Counted from the first letter of the stretch, positions 1,303 to 62,624 are shown. The stretch: 64,000 nucleotides of DNA from Paramoeba atlantica (GCA_977017575.1 CDRNVI010000030.1:1-64000); one strand, 5' to 3'. Notes: generated from the letters alone by a model not told the origin. A program made the numbers and translations.

Positions 1303-1995
1303 TTACTTCTTCTTATACCTGCTGTACCCACAATGGCGAGTACTCCTTGGCACATGCGGCTTGATATGAACACATGCCGGAACAAAGTCAGGTATGACGA
1401 AATTGTTGTGAAGTAGTCTGGCCCACGTCAGAAACTCCGGAAGCTTTGTGAGATCAGGTTCTCCACGCAGAGTATTGTACGCAAGGTCGAGAATTCTCAA
1501 ACCGTCGGGGAGATGTGTAAGGTCAACTTCACCTTCAAATAGATTGAAATTCAAAACCAGTTTTTCCAGAGTAGATGGCAAATGCGTTAAATCCAACCCT
1601 CCATTGAATCGATTCGTACCAATATCAAAGTTTTTTAATCCCGCGGGTAGTACCGACAAGTCTACGTGCCCCTCCAAAAACGCTTGATTTGAAGCAGAAA
1701 AAGAGAGCAGCGTATTGGGGAGAAAATCCCATCGCAGTACACCTTTTATGCGGACATTTTCCTCTTCCTTCGCATACCGACTTGTGTCTTTGCGCCAATT
1801 GAGGTTTGTGACCTGTCCCTCGGGGTTGCACTGTACTAACTTCCACTCACACGCAGGCGTCTTCACGCTCCATGATTCCTCTTCAAAACTGGCATTACTC
1901 AGTAGTCGAAACAGATTATATTCTTGGGGCAGGACCGCGTTTCGCACCTTACTCGGTCGAGATGGGACATCAGCAGCTTGTACAGAACTCTTCAT
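1303..1995 (-). CDS. LRR protein 1 (230 aa), subfamily A
   Basis: RPSKVRNAVLPQEY motif, SWxxxTPACEW cap, 23-aa LDLTHLP repeats; close paralog of 7005..7706. Confidence 0.9.
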   Translation of the reverse strand: MKSSVQAADVPSRPSKVRNAVLPQEYNLFRLLSNASFEEESWSVKTPACEWKLVQCNPEGQVTNLNWRKDTSRYAKEEENVRIKGVLRWDFLPNTLLSFSASNQAFLEGHVDLSVLPAGLKNFDIGTNRFNGGLDLTHLPSTLEKLVLNFNLFEGEVDLTHLPDGLRILDLAYNTLRGEPDLTKLPEFLTWARLLHNNFVIPDFVPACVHIKPHVPRSTRHCGYSRYKKK

Positions 1996-2267
1996 TGTCG
2001 TGAAGGACTAGAATTTCTTTAAAATCCATATTAGACCATTGTTCGGGTTCATATATTCATATTTCGGTGGAATCTCCCCCTTTTTCCCCCCTTTGTTTTC
2101 CAAAAAAATATACTTCAAATGTTTTTTTGGAGTTGAGCGATTTTACAAACCTTCTAAATTGGTATTGGCGAAAGAAAAGGCATTGACTTATGCACATAAA
2201 AAAACTTAGCTTTTTGGAAAACGAAATCCTGCAATTTTCACAATTTTTGTGTTTTTTGCCCTTATTC

Positions 2268-3505
2268 ATGCCACAACGACGGGATTTTGGACGATCTCCG
2301 GAACATAAGCACTCCGAAAGGGCTTATTCTTCGCCTGGGCACATAAAAGCAAGCTGGCGCATGCTTCTTGTTGCCGATTACGAAGCAACACAGTCTTTTT
2401 CCCTAACCGCGCGCAATTTTCAAGTTCATGGAGCTACTGTGAACTGTAACTAAAGCGCTATCTTGATACTGGAGAAGTAAACTCCAAGAACGAGAAACAC
2501 GCCCCAACGAACATCGCTGTGACACCTGAACTACGTGAGGCTGCTTTGAAAGCGATAGACGAAGGTGTTCGAGATCAACCCTATGGCATCAGGAGCTGGA
2601 GTGAGCTCCACCGGTTAATGGAAAATCTTGGGTTCACTTGCTCTCGTCAAACTTTGACGACCCACATGAAATCATATGGCATCGTCTTGCGCACAGTCCG
2701 GAAATCCCCTGCACTTACCTCAGTGCATAAAGAGAAACGAGTACGTTTCTGTGAAGAAATGCTAACGTGGAGTGACGCGGAACTGTCCAATATCATTTGG
2801 ATGGATGAAAAAAAATTTACCTGTGGGAAGAGTGGGGGGCACATCACGTACCTCTGCCGCAAAACTGACGCTCCCAAGGAGCAGCAAGGTGAATTGGATG
2901 CATGGCATGGGGGGAATGGTGTTATGGTTTGGATGGCAGCGAGCCTTAAGCATGGGTTTCACCTTCACGTTTTTCCTTCTGTTCGTTCTCAAGGAAACCG
3001 AGGTACAGTGACGGGGGCTATTTTTGATGAAGCCATGAAGAAGCGTGGAGGGTTAATTTCTTACCTTAAGCGGCACCGTTCTAGCGTTATTGCAATGGAT
3101 AACTGTACGGTGCACAATCTGGCCAGGACAAGCTTTCAAGAGACAGGAATTACTGTTCTTCCTTGGCCAGCAAAATCACCTGATCTCATGCCCGTTGAAA
3201 ATTTATGGTCCATAATGGACAATTTCAAAAATGGCTTGGCCCCTAGAAATCGTACAGATTTGATCATTGCGATCGAAGCAGCGTTTCAAGATATTCAAAC
3301 GACACATTCTATAGCCTTTGAAAACGCTATGAAGAGCTTTCGTAAGAGATGCCGTATTGTGATTGAAAAGAACGGCGGAAACTGCAATTATTATTATTTT
3401 TTCTATTTTTTCCCGTGCTTTAGAAAGTTGCGAATCGCATTTGGGGTCCCTTTGTCGAGGGGGCAATACCCCCTTGTGCCTATCGCGACCATGTTGCGTT
3501 CATGA
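2268..3505 (+). pseudogene. IS630/Tc1-like transposase with DD32E spacing; one frameshift (~2448) and apparent stop-codon loss
   Basis: HTH-like N-terminus (ARNFQVHGATV..KRYLDTGEV) split across two frames; WMDEKKF (D1), GGNGVMVW, AMDNCTVH (D2), WPAKSPDLMPVEN (E). The natural end GGNCNY runs on into AT-rich 3' sequence. Confidence 0.85.
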
Positions 3506-3514
3506 GCCCTGTTC

Positions 3515-3601: not shown

Positions 3602-3724
3602 TATAAGAAGGAATACGGTGATAAACCTCGCGTCACCAATAAGTTACAAACATACTTTTCTATCACACACGAATTTATGCCACATCTGTTTTCATTCATC
3701 AATATCATAAACGTTTCGTTATAC

Positions 3725-4549
3725 TCACTTTGTACCGAATTTAATGTTTGTATTCCAGAATTCAATAGGCTGTAAAAGCTTAGGAAGAACTGACTTGTCA
3801 ATTTCGCCATAAAGTTCCGCGTTGTGGTGCAGAGAGAGATGTACCAAGCTTGGAGGAAGACGGTCAAACTTCACTAAACCAGAGAAAGAGTTGCCATGCG
3901 CGCTAAAGGTAGAAAGCGATGGAGGTAAATGTTGCAGCGAGAGCGGTCCTGTAAATCTGTTCTTCGACAATTGCAAGTATTCTAATTTTTTTGGCAAATG
4001 AGAAAGTTCGACGGCACCAGAAAGTTTATTCCCTCGAAGATTTAAGTATTGTAATCCAGAACACAGATTCGTGAGATCAACATTTCCTTCAAATTGGTTG
4101 TCACTCAACCAAAGGGAACGCAATCTGTTCGGTAACTGAGTCAAGTTTAACTCACCGATAAAAGTGTTCACGGCCAATCTTAAGTATCTAAGCTGTGATG
4201 GCAACGTGTGAAGTTGAAGCGATCCTCCCAGTCTGTTATTGAGAAGGTCACAATAAGACAACGTACACGGCAAAAAATTCCCCTGCAAGGTGCCCAATAG
4301 ATTCATTGAATCCCATATAATATGAGTCACGTGTTGATGCTCATCACATGTCACGCCTTTCCAATTGCATGCGGATAGACGTTTGACACGTCCAAACATA
4401 TTCTTCTTCGTCGTACGCCAGGATTTATGTTTTCCAGTTAAGTTTGAAATAAAACGTTCCAGCATACCCTCTTGGGGCAGTAGCAGAGAGGTAACTTTGC
4501 CTCGACGTAAATCGTCGGATCCGTCATCGATGCAGTAGTTGCCGTACAT
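3725..4549 (-). CDS. LRR protein 2 (274 aa), subfamily B (basic insert)
   Basis: IDDGSD..RGKVTSLLLPQE, SWRTTKKNMFGRVKRLSACNWKGVTCD cap, 23-aa repeats. Confidence 0.9.
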   Translation of the reverse strand: MYGNYCIDDGSDDLRRGKVTSLLLPQEGMLERFISNLTGKHKSWRTTKKNMFGRVKRLSACNWKGVTCDEHQHVTHIIWDSMNLLGTLQGNFLPCTLSYCDLLNNRLGGSLQLHTLPSQLRYLRLAVNTFIGELNLTQLPNRLRSLWLSDNQFEGNVDLTNLCSGLQYLNLRGNKLSGAVELSHLPKKLEYLQLSKNRFTGPLSLQHLPPSLSTFSAHGNSFSGLVKFDRLPPSLVHLSLHHNAELYGEIDKSVLPKLLQPIEFWNTNIKFGTK

Positions 4550-7004: not shown

Positions 7005-7706
7005 TCATTTATGGTTATATCGTACTTTGTACGGATTGAATCCACAGGGTCGTCTTCTACTCACATACGGCTTGATGTGTACACCTTCCGGAATAAAGTC
7101 AGGTATGACGAAATTGTTGACAAGGAGCCTGGCCCACATTAGCGCCTTCGGAAGCTTTGTGAGATCAGGTTTTCCGCACAGACTATTATGACACAGGTCG
7201 AGATTTTTCAAAGTATCGGGGAGGCGTGTAAGATCAACTTCACCTTCAAAACGATTCCATCCCAAACGCAAATCTTTCAGAGTAGACGGCAAATGCGTTA
7301 AATCCAAGCTTCCGCTAAACTGATTGCTACCAATGTCAAACTTTTTCAATCTTGCCGGTAGTACCGCCAAGTCTACGTGCCCCTCCAAAACCTCCTGCAA
7401 GGAAACATCGAAGGAGATCAGAGTGTCGGGTAGGAAATTCCATCGCAGTGAACCTTGTAGAGAGACTCTCTCCTCTTTGTCTCCATATGCGCTTTCGTAT
7501 TTGCGCCATTGTATCTTTGTCACCTCTCCCTCATCGTTACACTCCACATGCTTCCACACACAAGCGGGCGTTTTCTCGGTCCATGACTCCTCAGCGAAAC
7601 TGGCGTTACTCAGTAGTCGAAACATATTGTATTCTTGTGGGAGAACCGCGTTTCGAACCTTACTGGGTCGAGAGGGGACATCGGCCACGCGTACGGCACG
7701 TTGCAT
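7005..7706 (-). CDS. LRR protein 3 (233 aa), subfamily A
   Basis: ADVPSRPSKVRNAVLPQEY, TPACVWKHVECN, 23-aa repeats, C-terminal tail shared with LRR1. Confidence 0.9.
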   Translation of the reverse strand: MQRAVRVADVPSRPSKVRNAVLPQEYNMFRLLSNASFAEESWTEKTPACVWKHVECNDEGEVTKIQWRKYESAYGDKEERVSLQGSLRWNFLPDTLISFDVSLQEVLEGHVDLAVLPARLKKFDIGSNQFSGSLDLTHLPSTLKDLRLGWNRFEGEVDLTRLPDTLKNLDLCHNSLCGKPDLTKLPKALMWARLLVNNFVIPDFIPEGVHIKPYVSRRRPCGFNPYKVRYNHK

Positions 7707-8827: not shown

Positions 8828-8996
8828 ATATTATTCATGATCTTTTGGCGATTCTTCTTTTTTAGGCTCTTCGTTAAATGCGGTGGTTGTTTTCAACTTA
8901 GAAGTCACTCATGCTGCGCGCTTCGTGTTTAAAACTGCCTTCGCGTTTAACGAAAAGCCTAAAAAAGAAAAACCGCCAAAAGATCATGAATAATAT
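8828..8996. mobile_element. Foldback element with 95-bp core (8865-8959), copy 1
   Basis: Core GGCTCTTCGTTAAA..GCGGTGGTTGTTTT / AAAACT..CGCGTTTAACGAAAAGCC; inverted arms extend through AATATTATTCATGATCTTTTGGCG. Confidence 0.75.
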
Positions 8997-21318: not shown

Positions 21319-21453
21319 TTATCCTAAAATAATTTTAAGTCGCGTGACTTCGTATTCCAGAGGTAAGGTAGCGCCTCGTATTTTGCGTGGACGCTTGCAC
21401 GTCATCATTTGAGCTGCGCAGCGCAAACAAACTACTGAGAGATTGATTGACAT
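21319..21453 (-). pseudogene. Truncated LRR-family gene: N-terminal motif only
   Basis: MSINLSVVCLRCAAQMMTCKRPRKIRGATLPLEYEVTRL then stop; the motif matches RPGKIRGANLPQEYELTRL of LRR18. Confidence 0.7.
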
Positions 21454-21633
21454 TTTAATAATACTGTAGTACGACCCGCAAACGAATGAAGAGTTTAACA
21501 TTCGTTTTCATGCACAATGGACATTTTAAACAAATGATGGTTTCCCTTCTGTAGATGCCGATCCATAAACGTTGTTTCATAGCTGTTTGTAAATTCACAT
21601 ACATGCGCATGTAGCACGCGTTAAGGAACCGAG

Positions 21634-22491
21634 CTAACGATCATGTAAAGTTATCTGAGTACCGCTCACGCACAGCGAGGGGATGTTGACAATGGCTTTG
21701 TCGACTTCCCCGTAAAGATCCGTGTTGTCCGCCAAACTAAATGAAAGTAAGAATTCAGGAAGATGGTCAAACGTCACAGCACCACTGAATTGATTTCCCT
21801 GACATTCGAAATACTGAAGTGATGAAGGCAAGTGTTCTAAATTCAACGGTCCTGTAAAACGATTGTGCGAAATATTCAAGTGTTCCATGTTGGAGGGTAA
21901 GCCAGTAAGATCGACTTGACCAGAAAGTTGATTCGAATTAACTTGAAGCCACTTCAAATTCAAAGGCAGGTGGATGAGGTCCAGATCCCCTTCAAAGTTG
22001 TTTTCGTGCAAAATAAGCATATCCATTGCGCCATGCGAATGGGGCAGATCTAATGAGCCCGAAAACGAGTTGACGCATACGTTCAACATTGTCATTTGTA
22101 AAGGCAAAACATCAAGTGGCATGCTTCCGGTAAATTTGTTATCCCATCCAGCAAACTCACGTAGTGTACGGCATAGATAATTCCATTCCAATGACCCCGA
22201 GAGACCCATAAACATCCACATTATTTTTGACACGTGTAATTCAGCATCACAATTCACACCCTTCCAATCACATGCATGGGTGGACGTATTCCATGAAGGA
22301 TCCAAATTCGAAATATTTTGGACGAATCGTGCAAGTTCATATTCTTGTGGTAAATTTGCTCCCCGTACTCTATGCGCCTTTGTTGTCCCACCCGGAGGAG
22401 GGATATATGTGTCCTCATTTCGCTTTCTACGTTTCGTAGAGCGTCCATCGTCCTGTGTCCAAGAAGAGATTATCACAAGAGAGGTGAGCAT
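21634..22491 (-). CDS. LRR protein 4 (~285 aa), KRRKR subfamily
   Basis: TQDDGRSTKRRKRNE, HRVRGANLPQEY, HACDWKGVNCD cap, six to seven 23-aa repeats, GTQI end. First ATG is at 22491. Confidence 0.9.
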   Translation of the reverse strand: MLTSLVIISSWTQDDGRSTKRRKRNEDTYIPPPGGTTKAHRVRGANLPQEYELARFVQNISNLDPSWNTSTHACDWKGVNCDAELHVSKIMWMFMGLSGSLEWNYLCRTLREFAGWDNKFTGSMPLDVLPLQMTMLNVCVNSFSGSLDLPHSHGAMDMLILHENNFEGDLDLIHLPLNLKWLQVNSNQLSGQVDLTGLPSNMEHLNISHNRFTGPLNLEHLPSSLQYFECQGNQFSGAVTFDHLPEFLLSFSLADNTDLYGEVDKAIVNIPSLCVSGTQITLHDR

Positions 22492-40636: not shown

Positions 40637-41284
40637 TCACTCCTCGTCCAGGCAGAGGTTGGTATATCCCCAAGGCTCCCCGTTCAACACCGTAATCTGT
40701 GTGCGTCGAACATCATAGTAGAGATCGGAGTACAATCTCGCATTCAACACACCGTTGAGATCACCGTTTCTCGATAACAGCAACTCGTTCAGAGTGGATG
40801 GAAGTCTCGACAAGTCAACAGTTCCCGAAAAATTGTTCTCTTCCATGTTCAAATATTCCATCGAGCACGGAAGACACGTAAGATTTAGATGACCACTTAA
40901 CTCGTTATCCGAAACCCAAAAGTGTGTAGTGGTGGAGGGCAACGCTTCGAAGGGAACCTCACCATGGAGCCTGGTACGCCATGCATGTACCGTGGCTACA
41001 CGCGATGGGAGATATCTCCAAATCAATTCCCCTTTTAAGCAACGGGCACCCCAACGAATTTGTTCCACGTATTTTTCGAAGGGGTAACACTCAATGCCGT
41101 CCCACTCACACGCAGGGGTGTCAATGTTCCAGCTTGAGTGGATTTTTTCGATTTTTTCAACAAGTCTTGCTAAATCGTATTCCTCGGGTAGCGCAACGGA
41201 AGTCACTTTTGATGGACGAGATGGACGCGTAGCTGGCACATCTGAGGAACGTAACACACCAGTGAAGGCACTGATGGGAAACAT
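40637..41284 (-). CDS. LRR protein 9 (215 aa, short)
   Basis: RPSRPSKVTSVALPEEY, SWNIDTPACEWDGIECY, about four repeats. Confidence 0.88.
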   Translation of the reverse strand: MFPISAFTGVLRSSDVPATRPSRPSKVTSVALPEEYDLARLVEKIEKIHSSWNIDTPACEWDGIECYPFEKYVEQIRWGARCLKGELIWRYLPSRVATVHAWRTRLHGEVPFEALPSTTTHFWVSDNELSGHLNLTCLPCSMEYLNMEENNFSGTVDLSRLPSTLNELLLSRNGDLNGVLNARLYSDLYYDVRRTQITVLNGEPWGYTNLCLDEE

Positions 41285-41794: not shown

Positions 41795-42625
41795 TTATAT
41801 TTGGACACATTTTGGAATTGACGAGGATTTCACATCCAAAGTACCTTTATTTCCACTCAGACCTAAATGATACATACCTGAAGGCAATGCATCAAACCAC
41901 ACTTTCCCCGTAAATGCGTTGTCCGCAAGAGAGAGCGTATGTAATGCGTGCGGAAGATTTCGAAGCACCAACTTACCATCAAGCCTATTCTGTGACAGGT
42001 ATAACTCTTCAAGTTGGTTTGGAAGATTTGTTAAATCCACGCTCCCTACGAATTGGTTTCCTTGAAGATAGAGCTTGAGTAGCGCTCCGGGCAACAAAGT
42101 CAAATCCAATTTTCCCGAAAAATAGTTACAAGACAAAAGAAACACTTTCAAAGAAGGAGGAAGTCCCGTCAGGTCAAGCTCACCGGAAAACTTTGTAGAT
42201 GCTGACCAAAATTCTTCAAACGCTTGGGGTAGGGATCCAGTATCAAACGGTCCATGAAAGGAGTTGTATGAGATGTTTAAATTAATGAGCGTGGGGGGAA
42301 GTTCACAAACCCGAAAATATCCGTCAAGTTTATTACCTCCGATACGAACACTACACACCGTGTGGGGTAGGCTACCCCAGGTTAGATTACCCTTGAGTCC
42401 CTTGGACAAAAAGTCGATGTTTATGACTTCGTCGTCGAAATTACAAATGACACCATCCCATAAACATACCTGTGTTTTATTCTTGGTAATGACAAACCTC
42501 TTCTCCAGGTTCTCAATAAATTGTGCCATTAGCATGTCCTGCGAGAGGATGGCTCCTCGCACTTTACCCAGACGTGCTCGAGTGTGGGGTGAATCTGCAA
42601 ATTGCACTAGAGAAGACGTCGACAT
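41795..42625 (-). CDS. LRR protein 10 (276 aa)
   Basis: FADSPHTRARLGKVRGAILSQDMLM, VCLWDGVICN, LDLTGLP/LDLTLLP repeats. Confidence 0.9.
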   Translation of the reverse strand: MSTSSLVQFADSPHTRARLGKVRGAILSQDMLMAQFIENLEKRFVITKNKTQVCLWDGVICNFDDEVINIDFLSKGLKGNLTWGSLPHTVCSVRIGGNKLDGYFRVCELPPTLINLNISYNSFHGPFDTGSLPQAFEEFWSASTKFSGELDLTGLPPSLKVFLLSCNYFSGKLDLTLLPGALLKLYLQGNQFVGSVDLTNLPNQLEELYLSQNRLDGKLVLRNLPHALHTLSLADNAFTGKVWFDALPSGMYHLGLSGNKGTLDVKSSSIPKCVQI

Positions 42626-43666: not shown

Positions 43667-44497
43667 TTAATCGATTTTTGGAGTAAAATTTGATGAAATT
43701 TTAGTACCACCCACACCCAAGTTCTTCAGCGCGATTGGGAGAGTCAACTTTTCTGCTGTACCGCATAATTCAGCGTTGGCTTCTAAATTAAGGGTACTTA
43801 AGCTGATAGGAAGGCGGTTGAACATCACAAGGCCACTGAACTGATTTCTGTGACAGTTCAAAATTTGGAGTGATGAAGGCAAGTGCTGTAAGTCGAGAGG
43901 CCCTGTAAAACAGTTTTGCGATAGATTTACATGCGTCATTAGGCGTGGTAAGCGAGTAAGATCAAGATCCCCAGAAAACTGATTGTACTGTACCTGCAAA
44001 ACTTTCAAACTCAAAGGCAAGTGCTTAAAATCTACACATCCCTTAAACTTGTTGTCGCTGAAGAAGAGGTCTATCATTTCACCGGGCAAATGTGACCAAT
44101 CCAATTCTCCTGAGAAACCATTAGTAGAGAGATCAAATCTTACGATTTGAGATGGCAGAGCACCGAGTAAGACATTTCCTCTCAATTGGTTCAACCACGC
44201 ACGAAATTCGAGTACTGTGTGGCACAGATAGTTCCATTGAAGCGACCCTTTCATATTCATACCGTTCCAATTTATCCATATTACGTGTAATTCTTCATCA
44301 CAAGTTACATGTTCCCAATCACACGCGGGCGTGGAAGCATTCCATGATGGATGCGGATTCTCAATGTTTTGTACGAAGCGTGTGAGTTCATATTCTTGCG
44401 GTAAGTTCGCTCCTCGAACCTTACCTGGTCGCGTTTCCTGTGTGTTCGCATTCGAAGGATCCACTGTTTCGAAAAAGCAAAGCAACATGAAAGTCAT
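43667..44497 (-). CDS. LRR protein 11 (276 aa)
   Basis: RPGKVRGANLPQEYEL, SWNASTPACDWEHVTCD, 23-aa repeats, GTKI end. Confidence 0.9.
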   Translation of the reverse strand: MTFMLLCFFETVDPSNANTQETRPGKVRGANLPQEYELTRFVQNIENPHPSWNASTPACDWEHVTCDEELHVIWINWNGMNMKGSLQWNYLCHTVLEFRAWLNQLRGNVLLGALPSQIVRFDLSTNGFSGELDWSHLPGEMIDLFFSDNKFKGCVDFKHLPLSLKVLQVQYNQFSGDLDLTRLPRLMTHVNLSQNCFTGPLDLQHLPSSLQILNCHRNQFSGLVMFNRLPISLSTLNLEANAELCGTAEKLTLPIALKNLGVGGTKISSNFTPKID

Positions 44498-45300: not shown

Positions 45301-46125
45301 TCAGGGATCTTGGAAGCGAATGCCCGTGTTTCGTATATCGATGAAGGCTCGAATATTTGGAGAAGTCTTTATCTCTCCATAAAGATCTTTGTTATTATAT
45401 AAGGACAGTTTTCGCAAGTTTTCAGAAAGACAGTCAAAAAGAACTAAACCAGATAATGAATTTTGTTGACACTCCAAAGAAGTCAGTAATGCAGGCAAAT
45501 GTTGCAACGAAAGCGGTCCCGTGAATCTGTTGCTGGATAGATCGAGATTTCGTAAGTTCGTCGGCAAATGAGAAAGATCGACGGCACCGGAAAGTTGGTT
45601 GTTTCGCAAATATAAATATTCTAACCCACAAGGCAGAAGCGTCAGATCTACACTTCCGTCGAATTTATTGTCATTCAACCAAAGAGTACATAGTATTCTA
45701 GGTAGATCGCTTAAGTTTAACTCACCGATAAATATGTTGCGTTCTAAGTTGAAGTATGTGAGTCGCGGTGGCAACGCAACAAGGAAAACGGGTCCTGTAA
45801 GCCTGCAAAAAGAAGAGTCAAAACGAAAGACCGACTCGGGCAAATAATCCCACTGCAATGTACCTTGAAGTTTCATCCAGGTCCATATAATTTTCGTTGC
45901 TTGTTGGGATGCATCACATGTCACGCCTCGCCACTTACACACGGATAGGCGCTTGACACGTCCGAATGCGTTCTTCTTCGTCGTACGCCAAGACTTATCG
46001 CGTATTGTTAGATTCGAAATAAAGCGTTCAAGCCTATCTTCTTGGGGTAGTAACATTGAGGTAACCTTACCCCGATGTACATCAGACCCATCATCGATGC
46101 AGTCATTGCGATACATTTTATACAT
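45301..46125 (-). CDS. LRR protein 12 (274 aa), subfamily B
   Basis: IDDGSDVHRGKVTSMLLPQE, KSWRTTKKNAFGRVKRLSVCKWRGVTCD; close paralog of LRR2. Confidence 0.9.
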   Translation of the reverse strand: MYKMYRNDCIDDGSDVHRGKVTSMLLPQEDRLERFISNLTIRDKSWRTTKKNAFGRVKRLSVCKWRGVTCDASQQATKIIWTWMKLQGTLQWDYLPESVFRFDSSFCRLTGPVFLVALPPRLTYFNLERNIFIGELNLSDLPRILCTLWLNDNKFDGSVDLTLLPCGLEYLYLRNNQLSGAVDLSHLPTNLRNLDLSSNRFTGPLSLQHLPALLTSLECQQNSLSGLVLFDCLSENLRKLSLYNNKDLYGEIKTSPNIRAFIDIRNTGIRFQDP

Positions 46126-46431: not shown

Positions 46432-47238
46432 CTATTTATATTCGACAATCCCTGTCCCTTCGATGTTGAACCGGGCTCCGGTACGTGCGCTACGAAACTG
46501 TATCTTGTATACCGTACTGAAGAAGAAGGACTTTTCTTCGGTACGCATTTTCTCCGGCATGCGTGAAGCTCGATAAAAACCACGCAAATTTGGATTGCGC
46601 GAAAGCTCCAGTGAAAACAGATTGCGCGGCAGGTGATCTAAGTCCACTACGCCATGAAATTGATTCATCATGAAGTCCATGTCCTTCAATGAGCTTGGGA
46701 GTTGAGTGAAATTCAACTCACCCGTTAAGCTATTCACCCCGACGGACAAGGTCTTTAGCGTCGCTGGCAAGTGGCTGAGATCAATCGGACCTTCAAATTT
46801 ATTCTGATGCAACGACAAATTTTCTAACGTGGTAGGCAGATCACATAGATTTATGGCTCCCGTAAATTTGTTTTGGTAAAGACTCATAGAAAGAAATCCC
46901 TGAGGCAAATGTTCCGTAGGAGATTCGCCCCACAATTCCAGCGTAAGTGATCTGAAATAAAGCAACGTACTTGGCAACTTCCAGCAAATTTTTCCACGCA
47001 AGAAGGTGAAATCCAATGCTACATACTGAAAGCCTATTTGGCTGACATCTCCACCCTCCGTACATGTGACCCCTTTCCATTTGCACGCGTGTACTGTAGT
47101 GTTCCACGATGGGTGCGGATTCTCCACGTCCTTCACCAATTCAGCAAGTATGTACTCCTGCGGGAGTGGGGCCCTAGCCTTGCCCAGTCGTGCTGACTTT
47201 GTGTCAGGATCTGCCGTGGCAGCTGGCAGTGGACGCAT
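46432..47238 (-). CDS. LRR protein 13 (268 aa)
   Basis: ARLGKARAPLPQEY, SWNTTVHACKWKGVTC, 23-aa repeats. Confidence 0.88.
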   Translation of the reverse strand: MRPLPAATADPDTKSARLGKARAPLPQEYILAELVKDVENPHPSWNTTVHACKWKGVTCTEGGDVSQIGFQYVALDFTFLRGKICWKLPSTLLYFRSLTLELWGESPTEHLPQGFLSMSLYQNKFTGAINLCDLPTTLENLSLHQNKFEGPIDLSHLPATLKTLSVGVNSLTGELNFTQLPSSLKDMDFMMNQFHGVVDLDHLPRNLFSLELSRNPNLRGFYRASRMPEKMRTEEKSFFFSTVYKIQFRSARTGARFNIEGTGIVEYK

Positions 47239-48675: not shown

Positions 48676-49299
48676 TTAATTCTCTTTAATTCCTGTCTGG
48701 TTGAGACGTAGAGACAACACGTGATGCCTTTCACTCAACATATTGTGATCTAACTCTCCAACGAGTGCCGTATTCCACTGTAAGCCTAACTCTTGAAGGC
48801 TTGCGGGGAGAGCGTCAAAGTGTACCTCTCCACTAAACTGATTGTAATCGAGTCGCAGAACCCGTAGCCCACAAGGCAAGAAGCGGAGCTCCACTGGACC
48901 ACTAAGCGCGTTGCAATGAACATGAAACCGTGTGAGTTTGGATGGTAAATTCTCCAAAGGAAGATGACCAGTGAGCTCGTTCTCCGGGACGACAACACTG
49001 TTTATGGGAAGTGTAGCCAAATATTCCCAGCATAATGAGCCGCGCAAGCCATAGTCTGCCCAATCGATATCATACGTTCCTTGCGCAAAGAATATACCTG
49101 CCCACTCAGCCGCGGGCGTGTGCGTGTGCCACGAAGCATCTGGACGCTCGACGTTTTGTATGAATTTTTCAAAGTCATATTCCACCGGAAGAGAAGTACC
49201 CCGTACCTTCTTCGGGGGCGCTTCCTTTGTAGCGGTTGGAGTGTCACAGGTTTTAATATGAACCTGGGGGGATAGACGTGAGGGAATATACATACACAT
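48676..49299 (-). CDS. LRR protein 14 (207 aa), cap cysteines absent
   Basis: PPKKVRGTSLPVEY; cap reads SWHTHTPAAEWAGIFF; about four repeats. Confidence 0.85.
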   Translation of the reverse strand: MCMYIPSRLSPQVHIKTCDTPTATKEAPPKKVRGTSLPVEYDFEKFIQNVERPDASWHTHTPAAEWAGIFFAQGTYDIDWADYGLRGSLCWEYLATLPINSVVVPENELTGHLPLENLPSKLTRFHVHCNALSGPVELRFLPCGLRVLRLDYNQFSGEVHFDALPASLQELGLQWNTALVGELDHNMLSERHHVLSLRLNQTGIKEN

Positions 49300-49561: not shown

Positions 49562-50251
49562 TCAACGTCCAGGGAGAGCTTGAGTTCCAAATTCTACATT
49601 GTTGGGCACAGTCCGCTGAACGTTAAAGAAGTTATGTTCCAGATTTATATTCTGCACATTTTCGGAGACGTGTGTCAAGTCCAAGCTACCAGACAGATTG
49701 TTGCCTCCCAGATAGAGACATTTTAGATGCGCAGGAAGACGCGTGAGATCAATTGTCCCTTCAAATTGATTGTTACGTAAATCCAAGATTTCCAATGCAG
49801 AGGGTAGATGTATCAGATCTAATTGCCCACTGCATTCATTGGTACGAATGTTAAACTTTGTTAAACAATTGGGTAGTACGGAAAGCGGCACAGGGCCTGA
49901 TAAGTCCTGCACGTATGCTGTAAAGAGAATTAGCGTATGCGGGATGTACTCCCACAGTAGTGGACCATCCAAAATGGGAAATTCCGAACCACCTTCATCT
50001 GTCTCATCTTCAAACAGTTTATTATCCCAGCCCAGTGAAGTTACTTGCTTTTCCGCATTACACAACACATATCGCCACTCACATGCGGGAGTAGCCTCTG
50101 TCCACGATTCCTCTAGGGACGCAAGATTACTCACAAAGCGAGACAATGTGTATTCCTGTGGTAAGACAGCGCCTCGCACTTTACTTGGTCGAGATAAAAT
50201 ATCTGCATTCGTAAGTAAAATTGCACGCATCGTATTGAAAGGATGAACCAT
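49562..50251 (-). CDS. LRR protein 15 (229 aa), subfamily A
   Basis: ADILSRPSKVRGAVLPQEY, EESWTEATPACEWRYVLCN, 23-aa repeats. Confidence 0.9.
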   Translation of the reverse strand: MVHPFNTMRAILLTNADILSRPSKVRGAVLPQEYTLSRFVSNLASLEESWTEATPACEWRYVLCNAEKQVTSLGWDNKLFEDETDEGGSEFPILDGPLLWEYIPHTLILFTAYVQDLSGPVPLSVLPNCLTKFNIRTNECSGQLDLIHLPSALEILDLRNNQFEGTIDLTRLPAHLKCLYLGGNNLSGSLDLTHVSENVQNINLEHNFFNVQRTVPNNVEFGTQALPGR

Positions 50252-51818
50252 GAAGGTGTGAAAGGAGTAGAGATTTACTCTTTTTTTGAAATTTAACTTG
50301 CGCTTTTTTAGGAGCCACTATTAGGTAGGTGAGAAAAATGTCGATGAATTCAGTTTTGAGAGAACGAATGATTTAGAGACTCACCAAAGACTTGAGTGAC
50401 CAGTAAATGTGAAGAAAGAACAAAAATCGAAAGCCTTCTGTGAACCCCCATTTAATACTTTACAATCCAATGGGGTAACTCAGTAAGAGTAAAATTGTAC
50501 ACTTCTGTTCTTGCGATTTTGAAACTCTTCCATGAAAGTGAAAGGTACAGTTTTTGTACTGCGTATGTACTCTCCCGCATGAGCTGGACATCGGTTGTCG
50601 GATAGAGTAGAAAAAGCGGTCGGTAAACATAAGTTTTGGTGGTACAAAAAATACTTTTCAAAGAATTTTAGAATCGAAATAAACATTTTGTCAGGTCTAA
50701 GATGTTGACCTTCTAAGAGGTTTGTTCTCTAAGATTACGCTTGTAATTATTCAAAATAAATTGATAGGTCCCTAGGGAATGGTTGCATTATTTTAGAGAC
50801 GGGTTATGTGTAAAAATGATGTGTCGTAAGAAAACTTTGCGGAGATAGATGCATTTCATAAATCAGTCCATGCAAAGCCTCGAAAAGTTGTTTCATGTAA
50901 CTGTTCAAACTTCTAATTAAAATATCATCATGCAGAGGAAGAATATTTTACAAACCCGAACGTGTATTTTACAATACGCTGATCTTACAATTAGGAAACT
51001 CTAGACGTAGTTTTCTCGAATGTTCTGTGTCGAAGATCGTGTGGGGACAAAGAAGGGAAAGTACTTTAAAAAACCACGTGAAGAGTACAGGGGTCATTTG
51101 ACGAAAAAACCAAAAAGGCGGAGACGTACACTTGTATGTTGTTTCTTGAATCGACACTGGAGGAGAACCCTCTGTCATCCTGGATTAGAGCAATTACCCA
51201 ATGAAATGAACACTAAATCTTTATTTACTTTATTTTTCAATACAGTTTCTATACCTTGTTGTACTTTTTCCCTAGCTCATCTTTCCCTTTCCCAGAAGCG
51301 GGCATGCTCTTAACCTTATATGTACTTTTATGTATGTCCGTTTTCGGATGGCGCTAGGGCCGGAAACTCCTCTTTCTGTTGAATAGGGACCGCCGCTTCG
51401 CAGACTCGTGCAGCGCGTCAGACGCGCTGAATGCCCCTGCTGGATGATCGCAGGGGAGAGCCTCTCCACGACTTTGTGTAGCCCAAAGGCTTCTTGCAGA
51501 TTCTCAACGACGCCCCCCCCCAGTGGAAGTCCAGTGCCTCCTTCACCCCCTCCCATGCGCTGCAGGACCTCCCTTGAGGACCACGCTGCGTGGTCCTCAA
51601 TCCCTACGTACGACAGGCGTTGACTGCGCCGTAATGGCCGTTGATACCGGTCGTCGTACACGACGTATCGTCGTACGACAGGCACCCACCCTGCAGGTTT
51701 TGCCCTGCATGAAATATAACTTCCATTACGCATACATTTTGAATGAAAATGTGTGAAAGTATGGTTTTTGCAGCCTACAATCATGCCGTGGCCCACAGTT
51801 TACAGTGTAGGTGAAAAC

Positions 51819-52595: not shown

Positions 52596-52690
52596 GTGGC
52601 TTCGCTAAACGCGGTGGTTGTTTTCAACTTAGAAGTCACTCATGCTGCGCGCTTCGCGTTGAAAACTACCTCCGCGTTTAACGAAGCCAC
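52596..52690. mobile_element. 95-bp-core foldback element, copy 3
   Basis: TA|GTGGCTTCGCTAAACGCGGTGG ... CTCCGCGTTTAACGAAGCCAC|TA. Confidence 0.8.
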
Positions 52691-53078
52691 TAAAAAATAA
52701 AAATCGTGAAAAAATCATGAACAACCTATTTTTGGGGGTAAAAGGGCTCGATGTTTCGGCGAGAATTGCGAAATTTTAACCCAAATTTCATATCCCTGTC
52801 GGGTAAATGGGTAATTACCTACATTGCGGTAAACGGGGGTAATTTACCCGGGTCATTGACCCATTTACCCGCTTTCACCCTGATTTGCCAACCAACCATA
52901 CGATCCCGTACTACAATGAAGCTCGATGAGTGTGCCAACTTTGCTGAGCAAGTTGTAGCTACAGAAACAGTATCACATTCCATAGAGGGAAAAATCCATC
53001 CTTCATCCGTTTACCCCCTTTTCTATCCCCTAAACCAAATAATTGTTTTATTTGGTCAATTTAAAAAAAAAAAACGAA

Positions 53079-54073: not shown

Positions 54074-55006
54074 TCACTTTGTCGTTACCAAACCCGTTTT
54101 AAAATGATGTTCCTTATCATCGTTTACAATTACATGATCGAACTTGTTCTCGGCATAATTCAAATACTTTAGATTCTTTGGGAGGCTAGACAGATCAAGG
54201 ACTCCAGAAAAATGATTCGTGTCAATTGTCAACCGCTCCAAATTAGAGGGAAGGCGGCTAAGATCGACCGCCCCCGAGAAATTATTTTTATGCAGGTAGA
54301 GCTCAGCTAAGCTCGTGGGGAGATCGTGAAGATCCACTTCACCACTTAATCGGTTGAGAGAAATAACCAACTTTTTAATATTTGCCGGCATCAATGATAA
54401 TGAGATCCCGCCACTGAATCCCGCGTTTGCGGCGTTAAACATACTAATGGACGTTGGCAGCTGCTCTAACGCAAGCTCTCCTTCCAAAGCATTCCCACTT
54501 ATGTCAAAACTTTGCAGATTCACGGGAAGGTCGTGAAGCTCAACTTTCCCGCATAGCACATTATAGTCCAGAGCAATCCGTACAGAGGGATGGGGAAACA
54601 AGGCGGTGGGAATCGGTCCCGAGAGTTGATTTCCGCAACCATAATTAAGTCTCCCCAGCTCTAACGTATGAATGCTGTCGGGTAAATGGCACCAGGAAGG
54701 GTCGCCACGGAGGGCACGCCCGCACCAGGACACAGTAACGACCCTTTTATGCGTATCGCACGTTACCCCACTCCACTCACATGCTTGTACGTGAGCGTTC
54801 CACGTCTTATGTGTTTTGGAAAAGTTCGACACAAACGCAGAGAGCTGAACTTCTTGAGGTAAGAGCGAACGCGTTGCTTTTTGTGGTTTCCGAGAAGAAT
54901 CTGCAAAAAGCGCCACACGCATGGGTAAAACTGATATATCTCTAAGTCGTATCTCCGTTGCAACTGCAAAATAAATGTGCTTCAACAAATATGCTAACAA
55001 GTGCAA
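54074..55006 (-). CDS. LRR protein 16 (up to 310 aa; first ATG at 54922)
   Basis: FADSSRKPQKATRSLLPQEVQL, TWNAHVQACEWSGVTCD, about seven repeats. The track start at 55006 is TTG. Confidence 0.88.
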   Translation of the reverse strand: MHLLAYLLKHIYFAVATEIRLRDISVLPMRVALFADSSRKPQKATRSLLPQEVQLSAFVSNFSKTHKTWNAHVQACEWSGVTCDTHKRVVTVSWCGRALRGDPSWCHLPDSIHTLELGRLNYGCGNQLSGPIPTALFPHPSVRIALDYNVLCGKVELHDLPVNLQSFDISGNALEGELALEQLPTSISMFNAANAGFSGGISLSLMPANIKKLVISLNRLSGEVDLHDLPTSLAELYLHKNNFSGAVDLSRLPSNLERLTIDTNHFSGVLDLSSLPKNLKYLNYAENKFDHVIVNDDKEHHFKTGLVTTK

Positions 55007-58758: not shown

Positions 58759-59658
58759 TTACGCACGTTTTATGTTTGAAGTTATGCGAGTATTTCCAAC
58801 CCAAATACATTTCAACGTCTTTGGCAACTTTGACGTTTCAACATATCCGGACAGCATAGGGTTGTTCGTAACCCGAAGTATTTCGAAACTTCGAGGAAGA
58901 CGATCAAACTTGGCAACGCCAGTAAAGTTATTATTTTCACAATCCAGATGTACGAGCGAGGGAGGCAAATGCTCTAAGTCCAGAGGTCCCGTTAGTTTGT
59001 TATCCGGAAAAGATAAATCGCTCAATTTTCTCGGCAGCCCGGTAAGATTTACTTTCCCGGAAATTTGGTTCTCGCTCATACAGAGCTTTCTCAAGGTGGA
59101 GGGCAAATGGGTTAGATCAACATTTCCTTCAAACTTATTATCTTTCAGCAAAAGTGACTCCAGGCGGGCCGGCAAATGAGTCAGATCCAATTCTCCCGAA
59201 AAAGCATTGGTCGAGAGCTGCAGATAGCTCAGTCCTGGAGGCAGCTCACTAAATGATACCCCTCCAGTAAGTCCGTTTTCCCACACAGAAAAATTACGTA
59301 CTGTGCGGCACAGATCCCCCCAAGAAGGGGATCCGGAAAGAAACATAAAGCCCCAATTCACCTCCATGACATTTAACTCTTCATCACACGTAACGCCTTC
59401 CCACTCACATGCGGGATTGGATGTATTCCATGTGGTCTTCGTCTTGTGTATGTGTTGAATAAATTGTGAGAGTTCGTATTCTTGAGGTAATTGGGCTCCT
59501 CGTACTTTACTGGGACGTTTCTCTGTGATTCTGCGGTCCGGAAGATCCATAGCGTGAGAAATGTAAAATTGCGGAAAAGGTGAAAAGGCTAAATATTCTT
59601 GAATGTAACCGAAAGTCACCTCTCTGTCGAAAGAAAGAATAGATTCTATTATTGTCAT
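58759..59658 (-). CDS. LRR protein 17 (up to 299 aa; alternative ATG at 59550)
   Basis: KRPSKVRGAQLPQEYEL, TWNTSNPACEWEGVTCD, 23-aa repeats. Confidence 0.9.
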   Translation of the reverse strand: MTIIESILSFDREVTFGYIQEYLAFSPFPQFYISHAMDLPDRRITEKRPSKVRGAQLPQEYELSQFIQHIHKTKTTWNTSNPACEWEGVTCDEELNVMEVNWGFMFLSGSPSWGDLCRTVRNFSVWENGLTGGVSFSELPPGLSYLQLSTNAFSGELDLTHLPARLESLLLKDNKFEGNVDLTHLPSTLRKLCMSENQISGKVNLTGLPRKLSDLSFPDNKLTGPLDLEHLPPSLVHLDCENNNFTGVAKFDRLPRSFEILRVTNNPMLSGYVETSKLPKTLKCIWVGNTRITSNIKRA

Positions 59659-60358: not shown

Positions 60359-61192
60359 TTATTCAATGTTGGTAGATATTTGTGTACCGTCCACACGAAT
60401 ATGTCGCAAAGATGTGGGAATAACGTCTTTATCAATTTCGCCGACCAGTTTCGTATTTTCTTCCAAAGTAAGCTTACGCAGTCCTTCCGGAAGACAGTCG
60501 AGGAGCACAATACCACTGAATAGATTTCCATGGCCCTCAAACACTTGGAGAGAGGGAGGCAAATGTTGGAGGTCAAGGGGTCCCGTAAAATGGTTCCTTG
60601 CAAGTCCCAGGAGTCTCAGGTTGCTAGGCAAGTTACTCAAGCACACAGACCGGGAAAAGTTGTTTTCATTGATATTAAAAAACGTCAAAGCTTCAGGCAA
60701 ACGGGTCAGGTCCACGCACCCCTCAAAGTTGTTTTGGGTTAATATAATTGTATCCATTTTTTCGGGAAGATGCGAAAAATCCAACTCTCCAGAAAAGGCA
60801 TTGCATGATATCTCTAGTTTGGTCATTTCTGCGGGCAATTTATTAAGCGGTACATTTCCAGAGAAACCGTTCTGCCATACCTGAAATTCTTGTAGCGTAC
60901 TGCACAGGTAATCCCATTGCAGCGTGCCGATGAGATCCATATAGCTCCAGTTTATCCTTGTCACACGCGAATTCTCATCACAACTCACGCCCATCCAATC
61001 AGACGCCTTTGTGGATGTGTTCCAGGAGGAAGGGGGGTTGGCAATCTCGCAAGTTAATCGTGTCAGTTCGTATTCCTGCGGTAAATTGGCTCCTCGTATT
61101 TTACCCGGACGGATGTGTTGCACTGCCGCGTTGGCGTCGTCATCAGCTGCACGACAAACCGAAGCCGATATGATGGCGATTAGCATAAGCAT
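60359..61192 (-). CDS. LRR protein 18 (277 aa), signal-peptide-like start
   Basis: MLMLIAIISASVCRAADD, RPGKIRGANLPQEYEL, SWNTSTKASDWMGVSCD, 23-aa repeats. Confidence 0.9.
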   Translation of the reverse strand: MLMLIAIISASVCRAADDDANAAVQHIRPGKIRGANLPQEYELTRLTCEIANPPSSWNTSTKASDWMGVSCDENSRVTRINWSYMDLIGTLQWDYLCSTLQEFQVWQNGFSGNVPLNKLPAEMTKLEISCNAFSGELDFSHLPEKMDTIILTQNNFEGCVDLTRLPEALTFFNINENNFSRSVCLSNLPSNLRLLGLARNHFTGPLDLQHLPPSLQVFEGHGNLFSGIVLLDCLPEGLRKLTLEENTKLVGEIDKDVIPTSLRHIRVDGTQISTNIE

Positions 61193-61679
61193 TTAAGAGT
61201 ACGCGCTCGTAAATGAAGGTGAAATCTACACTACTGAAATCTACTGGATATGCGTATTTTCCACTGTCATTATTAGATACAGTGACACTTTATGCAGTCT
61301 AATCATTTATACAAACGATAAGAAATCTGTAAAGCAATTTCCCGAATGTTCAATTTCAATTTCTGAGGATACATAATTCTGGTCTGGAATCACACGACAC
61401 GTCATGCAAACGCATTTTCGCGACGAAACAGAATTTCGAAAAAAAAATACCAGGAGCTTGGAAATACGGAAAGAAGCTATACTATCTATGTAGGACCTAA
61501 CGGAACTCGGTGCTCTTGTCGGGACAGATGCAAGCACGTATATTCCGCGCTGAGGAAGGAAAAGAGGGCTGACGTAAATTTTTTTATAATCAGAATTTTC
61601 AAAATTGGATCCGAGAAGATTATAATGTGGCTGTGCGGGTTTTTGAGGGACTTTTGAACTTCCTGATCCCCAAATAGGA

Positions 61680-62624
61680 CTATTCCAAAACAGTGATATC
61701 AGTACCGTCTATGCTCAAATTAGAGGGTGCATTCTCCTCTTTGATTTCACCACAGACTGCACACCCATCAAGATTAAGTGTATCTAAGCTTTTGGGAAGA
61801 GAGTCCAGTAAGACTGTTCCCTCAAACTCCGTGTATTGCGCATCAAGCTCTTCCAATAACGGAGGGAGGTGAGAAAGATCCAGCGCCCCCGTAAATTCAT
61901 TGTTTCCTATATACAAAATACGAAGGGTTTGGGGAAACTCACTGAGACATATCTCCCCGGACAGTTCGTTCATTTGGAGCGTCAGCACCGCGAAGTTGGG
62001 CGGAAGTTGTGTCAAATCTACCTCCCCTTCAAATTTATTGTCCCCTACGCACAGTTTTCGCATACTGGTGGGGAGGTGTCGCAGATCAAGCTCCCCGCTG
62101 AGCTCGTTTGTGAACAAGTAAAGAAGGACGAGATTCGGAGGCATCATGTCCAGCGGGAGGGTTCCATTCAGACGAGCACTGTTGGCTTTCATTTTCTCCA
62201 AACTCTTTGGGAGGCATTCCCACTGCATTGATCCAAAAAGGCTGCGATGACCCCAGTCAATCTGGATGATGGTTTGCTCTTTGCACATCACGCCAGGCCA
62301 CTCACAGGCGGGAGTGGATGTGTTCCACGCTGCATGCGGATGCTGAAGTCCGGCGATCAGTCGCATAAGTTCATATTCCTGCGGTAAATTTGCACCTCGC
62401 ACTTTACCGGGGCGGGCAACTGGACCATCCGCGGCATGTATTTCAGCGCTGAGACGAGAGTCGTGATCATTTCGTTTTCGGCGCTTCGGGGAGGGTTGCG
62501 GTGCGTCAGCCAAATCAACGCGGGATACAGCTGAGGGGAACATCGTAGGGCTGTTAGATGAAGAAGCTCTAGTGACTAGGTATGGAAAAAAATTTAACCG
62601 GAGAAAAAAGTAATGCAAACGCAT
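61680..62624 (-). CDS. LRR protein 19 (up to 314 aa; likely start 62543), KRRKR subfamily
   Basis: SPKRRKRND, RPGKVRGANLPQEYEL, AWNTSTPACEWPGVMC, 23-aa repeats. Confidence 0.9.
   Translation of the reverse strand: MRLHYFFLRLNFFPYLVTRASSSNSPTMFPSAVSRVDLADAPQPSPKRRKRNDHDSRLSAEIHAADGPVARPGKVRGANLPQEYELMRLIAGLQHPHAAWNTSTPACEWPGVMCKEQTIIQIDWGHRSLFGSMQWECLPKSLEKMKANSARLNGTLPLDMMPPNLVLLYLFTNELSGELDLRHLPTSMRKLCVGDNKFEGEVDLTQLPPNFAVLTLQMNELSGEICLSEFPQTLRILYIGNNEFTGALDLSHLPPLLEELDAQYTEFEGTVLLDSLPKSLDTLNLDGCAVCGEIKEENAPSNLSIDGTDITVLE

Follow-up and report, generated by a model that had tools for sequence, protein, structure and literature searches.

Leishmania PSA-2/GP46 proteins are of an extracellular, LRR-only type in which a Cx6C element precedes a variable number of leucine-rich repeats, and their genes lie in tandem in one transcriptional orientation, with some members secreted rather than anchored (PMC2584048). 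The PSA repeat has 24–25 residues, G(T/S)LPxxWxx(M/I)xxLxxLxL, in which G, P and W do not vary (PMC2584048). One-strand, intronless arrays are the usual layout of kinetoplastid-type genomes (PMC5601477, PMC1855330), and Perkinsela has polycistronic genes that lack introns and undergo trans-splicing (PMC5601477). For the origin of trypanosomatid surface families such as PSA, early-branching kinetoplastids provide the outgroup, and our literature search found no paper that describes the small LRR family of the Perkinsela type. Here we analyze a 64-kb window, meaning the whole stretch of DNA examined, which probably holds 19 maintained paralogs and a remnant of a Euglenozoa-specific, small LRR-only family in a tandem array of old origin, set in a polycistronic-type cluster.

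As a type of system, the array is not new. Its co-oriented, intronless, head-to-tail paralogs have the layout of kinetoplastid polycistronic arrays (PMC1855330, PMC5601477); however, many trypanosome arrays consist of near-identical dosage copies, whereas the paralogs in the window are deeply diverged. The bodonin/PSA-like surface families of Bodo saltans (PMC4728078) are likewise lineage-specific multigene families with a putative binding or adhesion role, but bodonins are large TM glycoproteins and the window proteins are small and unanchored. With PSA/GP46 the window proteins share a cap before the repeats with six residues between its cysteines, a tandem one-orientation layout and a variable repeat number. 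In contrast, their repeat is 23 residues long, carries N9, G13 and P21 and lacks W, they have no Thr/Ser-rich region, TM segment or GPI tail, and most have no recognizable signal peptide. Regular expressions find no match to G[TS]LP..W and no C-terminal CGCx(23-26)CxxxxxC domain of PSA in the 19 proteins, such that the resemblance to GP46-type proteins noted in the original prediction extends to the cap and the tandem layout but not to the repeat signature or the C-terminal Cys domain. Plant LRR ectodomains, receptor-like proteins and PGIP have the same N-cap helix and C-x-W-x-G-V-x-C element, yet the plant repeat has 24 residues (LxxLxLxxNxLxGxIPxxLxxLxx, with G-x-I-P-x-x-L where the window proteins have G-x-V-D-L-x-x-L-P), identity is ~20%, and the window proteins are without a C-terminal Cys cap, kinase or TM segment and mostly without a recognizable signal peptide.

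Results

An ORF listing and a six-frame scan with the family HMM resolve 20 family loci over 61 kb, namely 19 intact ATG-to-stop ORFs of 207–314 aa and one 5' remnant (Table 1). Every intact locus is a single ORF, and the scan returns no family match of any strength on the plus strand of the window. The 19 intact minus-strand ORFs of the original prediction are thus recovered exactly, from the first coordinate to the last. Subfamily B is marked by a 10-residue basic insert in the cap. Transposon debris is interspersed in the array: plus-strand ORFs, where identifiable, are Tc1/mariner-type transposase remnants, and the remaining plus-strand ORFs have no Pfam family match. No retroelement was noticed in the array.

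Table 1. Features of the LRR gene array; SP-like, signal-peptide-like; SNPs are between samples (syn, synonymous; non-syn, non-synonymous).
Feature	Position (strand)	Length (aa)	Group	N-terminus	Remarks
Array	1303..62624 (-)				
G01	1303..1995 (-)	230	A, with G03 and G15	no SP-like start	HMM E 6e-76
G02	3725..4549 (-)	274	B	no SP-like start	
G03	7005..7706 (-)	233	A		closest pair is with G01 (67% identity, dS 0.70, dN/dS 0.31)
Remnant	21322..21507 (-)			hydrophobic start	KIRGATLPLEYE N-terminal motif left, then stop
G04	21634..22491 (-)	285	C	weak SP-like start, then KRRKRNE	two 1-nt insertions break the ORF in another assembly
G05	28235..29062 (-)	275	C		chosen for folding (pLDDT 91.9)
G06	31251..32063 (-)	270	B		
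G07	35247..36071 (-)	274	B, divergent		Ser-rich C-terminus
G08	36443..37363 (-)	306	C	strong SP-like start, then KRRKRNE	
G09	40637..41284 (-)	215	pairs with G14		3 canonical repeats
G10	41795..42625 (-)	276	deep-branching		one extra repeat inserted
G11	43667..44497 (-)	276	C	short SP-like start	
G12	45301..46125 (-)	274	B		SNPs: 3 syn, 1 non-syn
G13	46432..47238 (-)	268	singleton		SNPs: 3 syn, 0 non-syn
G14	48676..49299 (-)	207	pairs with G09		both cap Cys lost
G15	49562..50251 (-)	229	A		SNPs: 1 syn, 5 non-syn; in-frame 12-nt deletion near cap in one sample
Spliced-leader-like 23-mer	51239..51261				only a lead
G16	54074..54922 (-)	282			longest branch, most divergent member
G17	58759..59658 (-)	299	C	long, non-hydrophobic extension	
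G18	60359..61192 (-)	277	C	strongest SP-like start	first cap Cys changed to Ser
G19	61680..62624 (-)	314	singleton	long region with KRRKRND	

All members follow one build, in which a plant-type N-cap (Cx6C, Pfam LRRNT_2) leads into canonical LRRs of 23 residues, and a short motif lies at the C-terminus. The repeat consensus is L1xxL4xL6xxN9xF11xG13xV15D16L17xxL20P21xx, and entropy peaks at x2, 3, 5, 7 and 8 (3.4–3.9 bits) versus 0.3–2.1 bits at framework (scaffold) positions. The cap C-x-W-x-G-V-x-C retains both cysteines in 17 of the 19 proteins. LRRNT_2 scores above its cut-off in four of five proteins tested (21–24 bits vs 20.7), with matches at E ≤ 0.01 in 9 of 24 family members. On these points the original prediction stands: the 23-residue period, the very variable exposed x positions, the Cys cap, and the grouping as a single LRR family whose plant LRRNT_2-like cap is of extracellular type. 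The number of repeats varies as it had claimed, but we count 3–8 canonical repeats per protein (usually 5–7), slightly wider than the 4–7 first given. The N-terminal motif, in contrast, is not private to the family as proposed, since LPQEYEL coincides in the superposition with helix 1 of the plant LRR N-cap, and the D..(R/K)V upstream of it has its homologue in the VDPSLGRVDY with which Perkinsela-type relatives start.

The AF2 model of G05 (pLDDT 91.9) was compared with known structures using VIA-align. Residues 34–275, cap included, superpose on plant LRR-receptor ectodomains in their N-terminal part, and the cap aligns from the first residues of those ectodomains (Z 22–26, rmsd 2.0–2.5 Å; Z 26 and rmsd 2.0 Å over 237 residues for the best superposition). 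All of the top structural matches are extracellular, namely plant LRR ectodomains and PGIP. Each protein would form a single curved solenoid, with an N-cap helix and Cx6C loop, 3–8 repeats and a short terminal strand.

Database searches return 487 proteins at E ≤ 1e-5 to the family. A Perkinsela sp. CCAP 1560/4 protein (KNH04475.1) is matched over its full length at E 9e-93 (8.6e-93 to profile A1), transcripts of Paramoeba aestuarina (MMETSP0161) and Jenningsia match the family profile at E 1e-62, and the nearest ESM Atlas clusters are assigned to Euglenozoa (433 members) and Discosea/Paramoeba (61). The named relatives, from Perkinsela sp., Paramoeba transcriptomes and a euglenid, are Euglenozoan, with the Paramoeba transcriptomes probably including a Perkinsela-like endosymbiont. 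The Perkinsela "leucine-rich repeat protein" family and its Paramoeba counterparts agree with the window proteins in size (~230–380 aa), in a related C-terminal end and, as aligned by eye, in an N-terminal module (hydrophobic start, D..G(R/K)V motif, helix) joined to the 23-residue G-x-(V/I)-D-L-x-x-L-P repeat. Identity is only ~30%, however, the relatives have VDPSLGRVDY...LMEML in place of the (A)D..RP(S/G)KVRGA.LPQEYEL of the window genes, and the cap cysteines that the window genes mostly keep are gone from the Perkinsela protein. Among 119 relatives, LGR[VL][DN]Y occurs in 66 and LP[QE]E[YV] in 10. The window genes form clades separate from these relatives, with G10 alone providing a weak link between them.

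In a related species, an array of nine family genes is also co-oriented and has an unrelated gene, for an MFS transporter, on the same strand. The original prediction had put the chance of 19 co-oriented genes at about 2^-18, but co-orientation and the absence of introns are the norm in polycistronic Euglenozoan genomes, so this figure carries no meaningful surprise. Most likely, the placement of the genes on one strand and without introns simply reflects the build of such genomes, and we attribute this layout to genome organization and tandem duplication rather than to any special property of the family. Judging from the family relatives and a single 23-mer resembling a kinetoplastid spliced-leader tail, the source genome is most likely of kinetoplastid type and related to Perkinsela. 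Upstream of the genes, sense-strand polypyrimidine tracts are not significantly stronger than antisense ones (p 0.12).

Paralog identity ranges from 26 to 67%, with dS of at least 0.7 and saturation in most pairs, and whole-gene dN/dS lies between 0.18 and 0.38. Resolved by site class, dN/dS equals 0.11 for the LRR framework, 0.40 for other x positions and 0.66 for concave-face x positions, the latter reaching 0.4 to 0.9. In this comparison of concave and structural positions, which the original prediction had called for, the concave sites have the highest ratio; the ratio is not near 1 throughout, and no site class exceeds 1. Between samples, 12 synonymous and 10 non-synonymous SNPs give pN/pS of ~0.25, and substitution density relative to a second assembly is 0.20% in genes and 0.79% outside them. 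Selection is mainly purifying. The family had been described as rapidly diversifying, and this description is not supported by a dS of 0.70 at the closest pair, a concave dN/dS never above 1 and the low pN/pS; paralog divergence is old and could not be shown to be fast. Nor were the suggested gene-conversion mosaics found, in that no recent conversion tract joins any paralogs and the longest stretch common to them is 300 nt at 79%.

Four genes were tested for expression, a check that the original prediction had named. In a run that is probably RNA, two contigs match G13 and one matches G15 at 99% identity or more; no contig reaches a 5' end, no trans-splice junction is seen, and the other two genes are not covered. 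Relatives of the family are also present in MMETSP transcriptomes.

Discussion

The framework of these proteins is conserved and the concave x residues are almost free between paralogs, from which we infer that each paralog presents a different binding surface. The array would then supply soluble protein- or ligand-binding modules and not dosage copies, with the binding role itself suggested by the fold. Where would such modules act? A simple hydrophobicity heuristic, cruder than SignalP, sorts the 19 N-termini into three SP-like (G08, G11 and G18), five weak and 11 with no hydrophobic start, and a hydropathy scan finds no TM-like segment (maximum 19-residue hydropathy 1.31) and no hydrophobic C-terminal tail of GPI type in any of the 19, so that most members lack a recognizable signal peptide and all lack a visible anchor, as the original prediction had it. 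The retention of both cap cysteines in most members fits a disulfide and hence the secretory pathway, and this conservation sits awkwardly with the 11 members whose hydrophobic start is degenerate or absent. Within a maintained array of binding modules, the minority keeping a hydrophobic start would likely be exported, KRRKRN(E/D) in some of them could be a dibasic processing site, and the copies without such a start would probably stay intracellular.

One alternative hypothesis, that of the original prediction, is doubtful. It takes the whole array to encode rapidly evolving extracellular proteins for recognition or as effectors, secreted or bound to the surface in the manner of PSA/GP46 or PGIP, with prey, host or pathogen molecules driving diversifying selection on the concave face. 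The extracellular-type cap with its Cys pair, the exclusively extracellular structural matches and the three clear SP-like starts, together with the strong SP-like start of the longer relative P0026, are consistent with this hypothesis, as are the peak of entropy and dN/dS on the concave face (up to 0.92 in the youngest pair) and the largely non-synonymous SNPs of G15. However, the 11 members without a hydrophobic start have stop codons just upstream of their start codons, and the other frames of the upstream DNA hold no frameshifted signal peptide. The absence of anchors argues against it as well, as do paralogs separated by dS of 0.7 to saturation with no site class above a dN/dS of 1, the pN/pS between samples, and N-glycosylation sequons that occur at chance (41 observed vs 43.9 ± 6).

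The opposite hypothesis, which we consider unlikely, is that the whole family consists of cytosolic or nuclear LRR adaptors that keep a plant-type cap, the few hydrophobic starts being incidental. It would account for purifying selection on members without an export signal (dN/dS is 0.25–0.27 in subfamily B, which has no hydrophobic start) and for the unenriched sequons, and KRRKRN(E/D) in G04, G08 and G19 can be read as a nuclear localization signal. This motif, though, falls among the members with hydrophobic or long N-termini, where a pro-peptide fits at least as well. Moreover, both cap cysteines have persisted at ~30–50% overall identity, and relatives in three other organisms conserve a hydrophobic N-terminus directly before the conserved motif.

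A quite improbable variant is that, among early-branching kinetoplastids, a plant-cap LRR scaffold of extracellular type was relocated to the cell interior. Most copies would have shed the export signal and remained under purifying selection with free concave faces, and together could recognize targets within the cell, such as viruses or intracellular bacteria; alternatively, in the endosymbiotic Perkinsela lineage, they might be sent into the host amoeba. Finally, that the array is a silent store of copies that decay or act as donors, like silent surface-antigen arrays, is hardly credible, for although many N-termini are truncated, a remnant and transposon debris lie in the array, G04 is frameshifted elsewhere and G15 carries mostly non-synonymous SNPs and a deletion, 19 of 20 loci are open at a dS that neutral decay would not allow, the framework is strongly constrained, conversion tracts are absent and probable RNA contigs cover two genes.

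An old array of maintained, diverged binding modules thus remains the reading that we prefer. It belongs to a large and little-described family that joins a plant-type cap to a distinct 23-residue repeat and is found in Perkinsela, Paramoeba transcriptomes, a euglenid and this genome, and that is a concrete candidate for an ancestral binder scaffold, with a localization puzzle posed by a conserved Cys cap and no export signal in most copies. In another assembly, the first 226 codons of G06 and 2 kb of upstream sequence are present in three tandem copies.

An array of 19 leucine-rich repeat genes on one strand

An ORF listing combined with a standard-code ATG-to-stop scan resolves 19 ORFs, all on the minus strand, that encode 207-314 aa and lie at 1303-62624; they are referred to here as G01 to G19 by rising coordinate. 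A family HMM made from these ORFs and run against all six-frame stop-to-stop pieces of the window returned exactly the same 19 (E 1e-65 to 1e-114) and one short additional minus-strand piece; on the plus strand, no match was better than E 0.8. The original prediction of 19 intact, co-oriented LRR genes is therefore confirmed. The additional piece is the 5' remnant of a family gene, since it still has the hydrophobic start together with the KIRGATLPLEYE motif but then runs into a stop. The repeat has a period of 23 residues with the consensus L1xxL4xL6xxN9xF11xG13xV15D16L17xxL20P21xx (91 units in register), and each protein carries 3 to 8 canonical units. Entropy is 3.4-3.9 bits at positions x2, 3, 5, 7 and 8, compared with 0.3-2.1 bits at the LRR framework (scaffold) positions. 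The N-terminal cap, C-x-W-x-G-V-x-C, retains both cysteines in 17 of the 19 proteins. Pfam LRRNT_2 falls slightly over its gathering score in four of five proteins tested and hits nine out of 24 members of the family at E<=0.01, consistent with the extracellular-type cap that had been proposed.

What does the shared orientation signify? A chance of 2^-18 had been assigned to it, a figure that presumes independent orientation of each gene and does not apply to this kind of gene layout. In Perkinsela, genes have no spliceosomal introns and are expressed by polycistronic transcription and trans-splicing (PMC5601477), one-orientation tandem arrays are typical of kinetoplastids (PMC1855330), and clusters of the Leishmania promastigote surface antigen (PSA) have a single shared orientation (PMC2584048). 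A related locus from a different species (L001 1-20897, from a 580-kb ENA contig) likewise carries, on a single strand, nine LRR genes related to those of the window together with a gene for an MFS sugar transporter. Judged against these layouts, the striking strand bias would be ordinary for such a genome. The nine genes, which flank the transporter gene, form a sister subfamily whose members start MCAFQLFLSVDPSLGRVDY and end SGVTSVVDENG, and no DNA similarity was found between this 21-kb locus and the window. ORFs are open in several frames at the transporter gene, pointing to a very high local GC content.

A spliced-leader search of the window revealed no spliced-leader gene and one 23-mer at 51239-51261(+) that resembles the conserved kinetoplastid spliced-leader tail (3 mismatches in 19). 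A second sequence at 52311-52340(+) also resembles this tail; the two, AATACAGTTTCTATACCTTGTTG and a variant, are each followed by TTGTAC and lie antisense to the array between G15 and G16. Polypyrimidine tracts upstream of the genes, scored as a possible trans-splicing signal, show no significant sense-strand excess (mean scores 12.9 versus 11.3, Wilcoxon p 0.12). No non-coding RNA was detected in the window with Rfam gathering thresholds or ARAGORN.

An old family maintained by selection

The genes had been described as "hyper-diverged" and rapidly diversifying, and the substitution data indicate that this divergence owes more to age than to speed. By the Nei-Gojobori method, dS is 0.70 between G01 and G03, the closest pair, and ranges from 1.1 to saturated for the others; whole-gene dN/dS is 0.18-0.38. 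When three independent pairs are pooled, dN/dS rises from 0.11 at framework positions to 0.40 at non-concave x positions and 0.66 at concave ones (range 0.39-0.92 for the latter). No site class exceeded 1 in five pairs, a test that saturation limits. Variation on the concave face is almost unconstrained, with no demonstrated adaptive diversification. Of the 20 loci, 19 are still open at pairwise protein identities of 26-67%, which is not neutral behavior and indicates that the family is maintained by selection.

A maximum-likelihood tree (median terminal branch 0.69) resolves four supported subfamilies, namely G01, G03 and G15; G02, G06, G07 and G12; G09 and G14; and G04, G05, G08, G11, G17 and G18; with G10, G13, G16 and G19 as singletons. 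Along the array, members of different subfamilies are intermixed. Mosaics from gene conversion had also been considered. In a repeat search between paralogs no tract reached 90% identity, the longest being 300 nt at 79% (G01/G03), followed by a 245-nt stretch at 62-73% (G02/G06/G12) and one of 84 nt at 77% (the G04/G08 pro-region), so there is no sign of recent conversion. The array is real, old and selectively maintained.

Relationship to Perkinsela-type proteins

A single-sequence word search recovered few relatives, and a profile built from 24 family members matched 487 proteins at E<=1e-5. These include a "leucine-rich repeat protein" of Perkinsela sp. CCAP 1560/4 (KNH04475.1, E 9e-93), Paramoeba aestuarina MMETSP0161 transcripts and a transcript of the euglenid Jenningsia. 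The amoeba Paramoeba aestuarina hosts a Perkinsela-like endosymbiont. Among ESM Atlas clusters, the nearest belong to Euglenozoa (433 members) and to Discosea, the latter being Paramoeba assemblies (61). In the relatives, a short hydrophobic stretch is followed by VDPSLGRVDY...LMEML, which aligns with the (A)D..RP(S/G)KVRGA.LPQEYEL of the window genes. The upstream part of the N-terminal motif, previously thought private to the array, is for this reason a family trait shared with Perkinsela-type relatives. The window genes belong with these uncharacterised proteins in a little-described Euglenozoan LRR-only family; no description of it was found in the Perkinsela genome paper, in that on free-living prokinetoplastids or in the Euglenozoa comparative paper.

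The window genes are not members of the PSA/GP46 family, since they lack its repeat signature and its C-terminal Cys domain (PMC2584048); what they share with PSA is limited to the Cx6C domain and tandem layout. Plant-specific LRR proteins share the cap and the fold, but differ in repeat length and in the second-half motif.

Predicted fold and cellular location

An AlphaFold2 model of G05 computed with the family alignment as input (pLDDT 91.9) shows disorder over residues 1-30, a helix at 37-44 and a regular solenoid beyond it. The best Foldseek matches are plant LRR-receptor ectodomains and PGIP, a plant LRR protein. By VIA-align, residues 34-275 of the model superpose on the first ~250 residues of the plant ectodomains (Z 26, rmsd 2.0 A, 237 residues), which identifies the LPQEYEL segment as the first helix of a plant-type N-cap, so that this part of the supposedly private motif is not private either. 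Taken with the variability pattern, this fold suggests that each protein would be a soluble binder, with specificity set by its concave face.

Where would such modules reside? A Kyte-Doolittle heuristic applied to the 19 proteins classified three N-termini as signal peptide-like (G08, G11 and G18), five as weak and 11 as lacking such a feature, and found no TM-like segment or hydrophobic tail in any of them, in agreement with the original prediction. Hidden signal peptides were looked for and not found: three-frame translation of the 240 nt upstream of each gene revealed no displaced or frameshifted hydrophobic exon, and several genes have stops 4-6 codons upstream of the ATG. Passage of the family through the secretory pathway, at least ancestrally, is favoured by the extracellular-type cap with its conserved Cys pair, the hydrophobic start kept by relatives, the three clear signal peptide-like members and a KRRKRN(E/D) stretch in G04, G08 and G19 that could be a dibasic pro-peptide site. 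However, the 11 copies without a hydrophobic start are still constrained, and N-glycosylation sequons occur at chance level (41 observed versus 43.9 +/- 6 expected). Weighing these features, we favour a mixed outcome in which some copies would be exported and most retained inside.

Expression and present-day variation

Expression was assessed for four genes in a 5.9-kb stretch using contigs of one run with the same species label, whose RNA nature is a guess. Contigs match G13 and G15 (Table), and elsewhere in the stretch only a 34-nt piece of G12, which is weakly positive for expression of two of the four genes. These contigs reach neither a 5' end nor a spliced leader. Relatives of the family are present in MMETSP transcriptomes.

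A second public assembly is 99.0% identical to the window over 15.9 kb, with five substitutions in 2.5 kb of G04-G06 (0.20%) versus 106 in 13.4 kb outside genes (0.79%). Together with contigs of other runs over G12-G15, this yields 12 synonymous and 10 non-synonymous coding changes (pN/pS near 0.25). The exception is G15, where five non-synonymous changes to one synonymous suggest that this copy may be under relaxed constraint; an in-frame 12-nt deletion near its Cx6C cap codons is reported at 50071 in one DNA run.

Structural differences were also observed. The first 226 codons of G06 and about 2 kb upstream are present as three tandem copies in the second assembly (window 31384-34090 versus L002 1-7179), the two extra copies being 241-aa ORFs with a single-residue difference from the full copy; this could be a difference in copy number or an assembly artefact at the contig end. 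In the same assembly, two 1-nt insertions in G04 (window 22122 and 22390; L002 about 15900-16850), one in a G run, split the ORF into three frames, reflecting a pseudogene allele or an error of long-read sequencing. At the 5' part of G13 (47002-47215), a second contig about 91% identical in two DNA runs lacks 34 in-frame codons (102 nt) around the cap-coding region and is probably a closer G13 paralogue elsewhere in the genome.

Spacers and mobile elements

The only identifiable plus-strand ORFs of the window are two Tc1/mariner-type transposase remnants, which are interspersed with the LRR genes and run opposite to the array. The other plus-strand ORFs scanned gave no significant Pfam match, with one weak sub-threshold zinc-ribbon; three long ones are presumably carried by mobile elements. 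Short, internally palindromic MITE-like repeats are dispersed in the spacers. Two spacer segments are high-copy repeats, where many contigs break and contig depth rises 10- to 100-fold in each of the three DNA runs.

Table. Remnants, repeats, plus-strand ORFs and expression matches in the window
Feature	Positions	Strand	Remark
Family-gene remnant	21322-21507	-	
G13 guessed-RNA contig matches	46708-47057, 47072-47229		99% or more
G15 guessed-RNA contig match	49670-49826		99% or more
Transposase remnants	103-867, 2519-3505	+	Pfam DDE_3 and HTH_Tnp_Tc3_2
Long ORF	13827-15320	+	no Pfam match
Long ORF	19871-20851	+	no Pfam match
Long ORF	38083-39153	+	no Pfam match
MITE-like repeats	8855-9011, 18742-18821, 27250-27323, 27935-28008, 52586-52742		
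Small repeat family	12235-12530/29403-29684		
Small repeat family	3515-3577/6669-6731/11015-11077		
Small repeat family	47499-47595/62670-62766		
High-copy repeat	44848-45046		G11/G12 spacer
High-copy repeat	47435-47633		G13/G14 spacer
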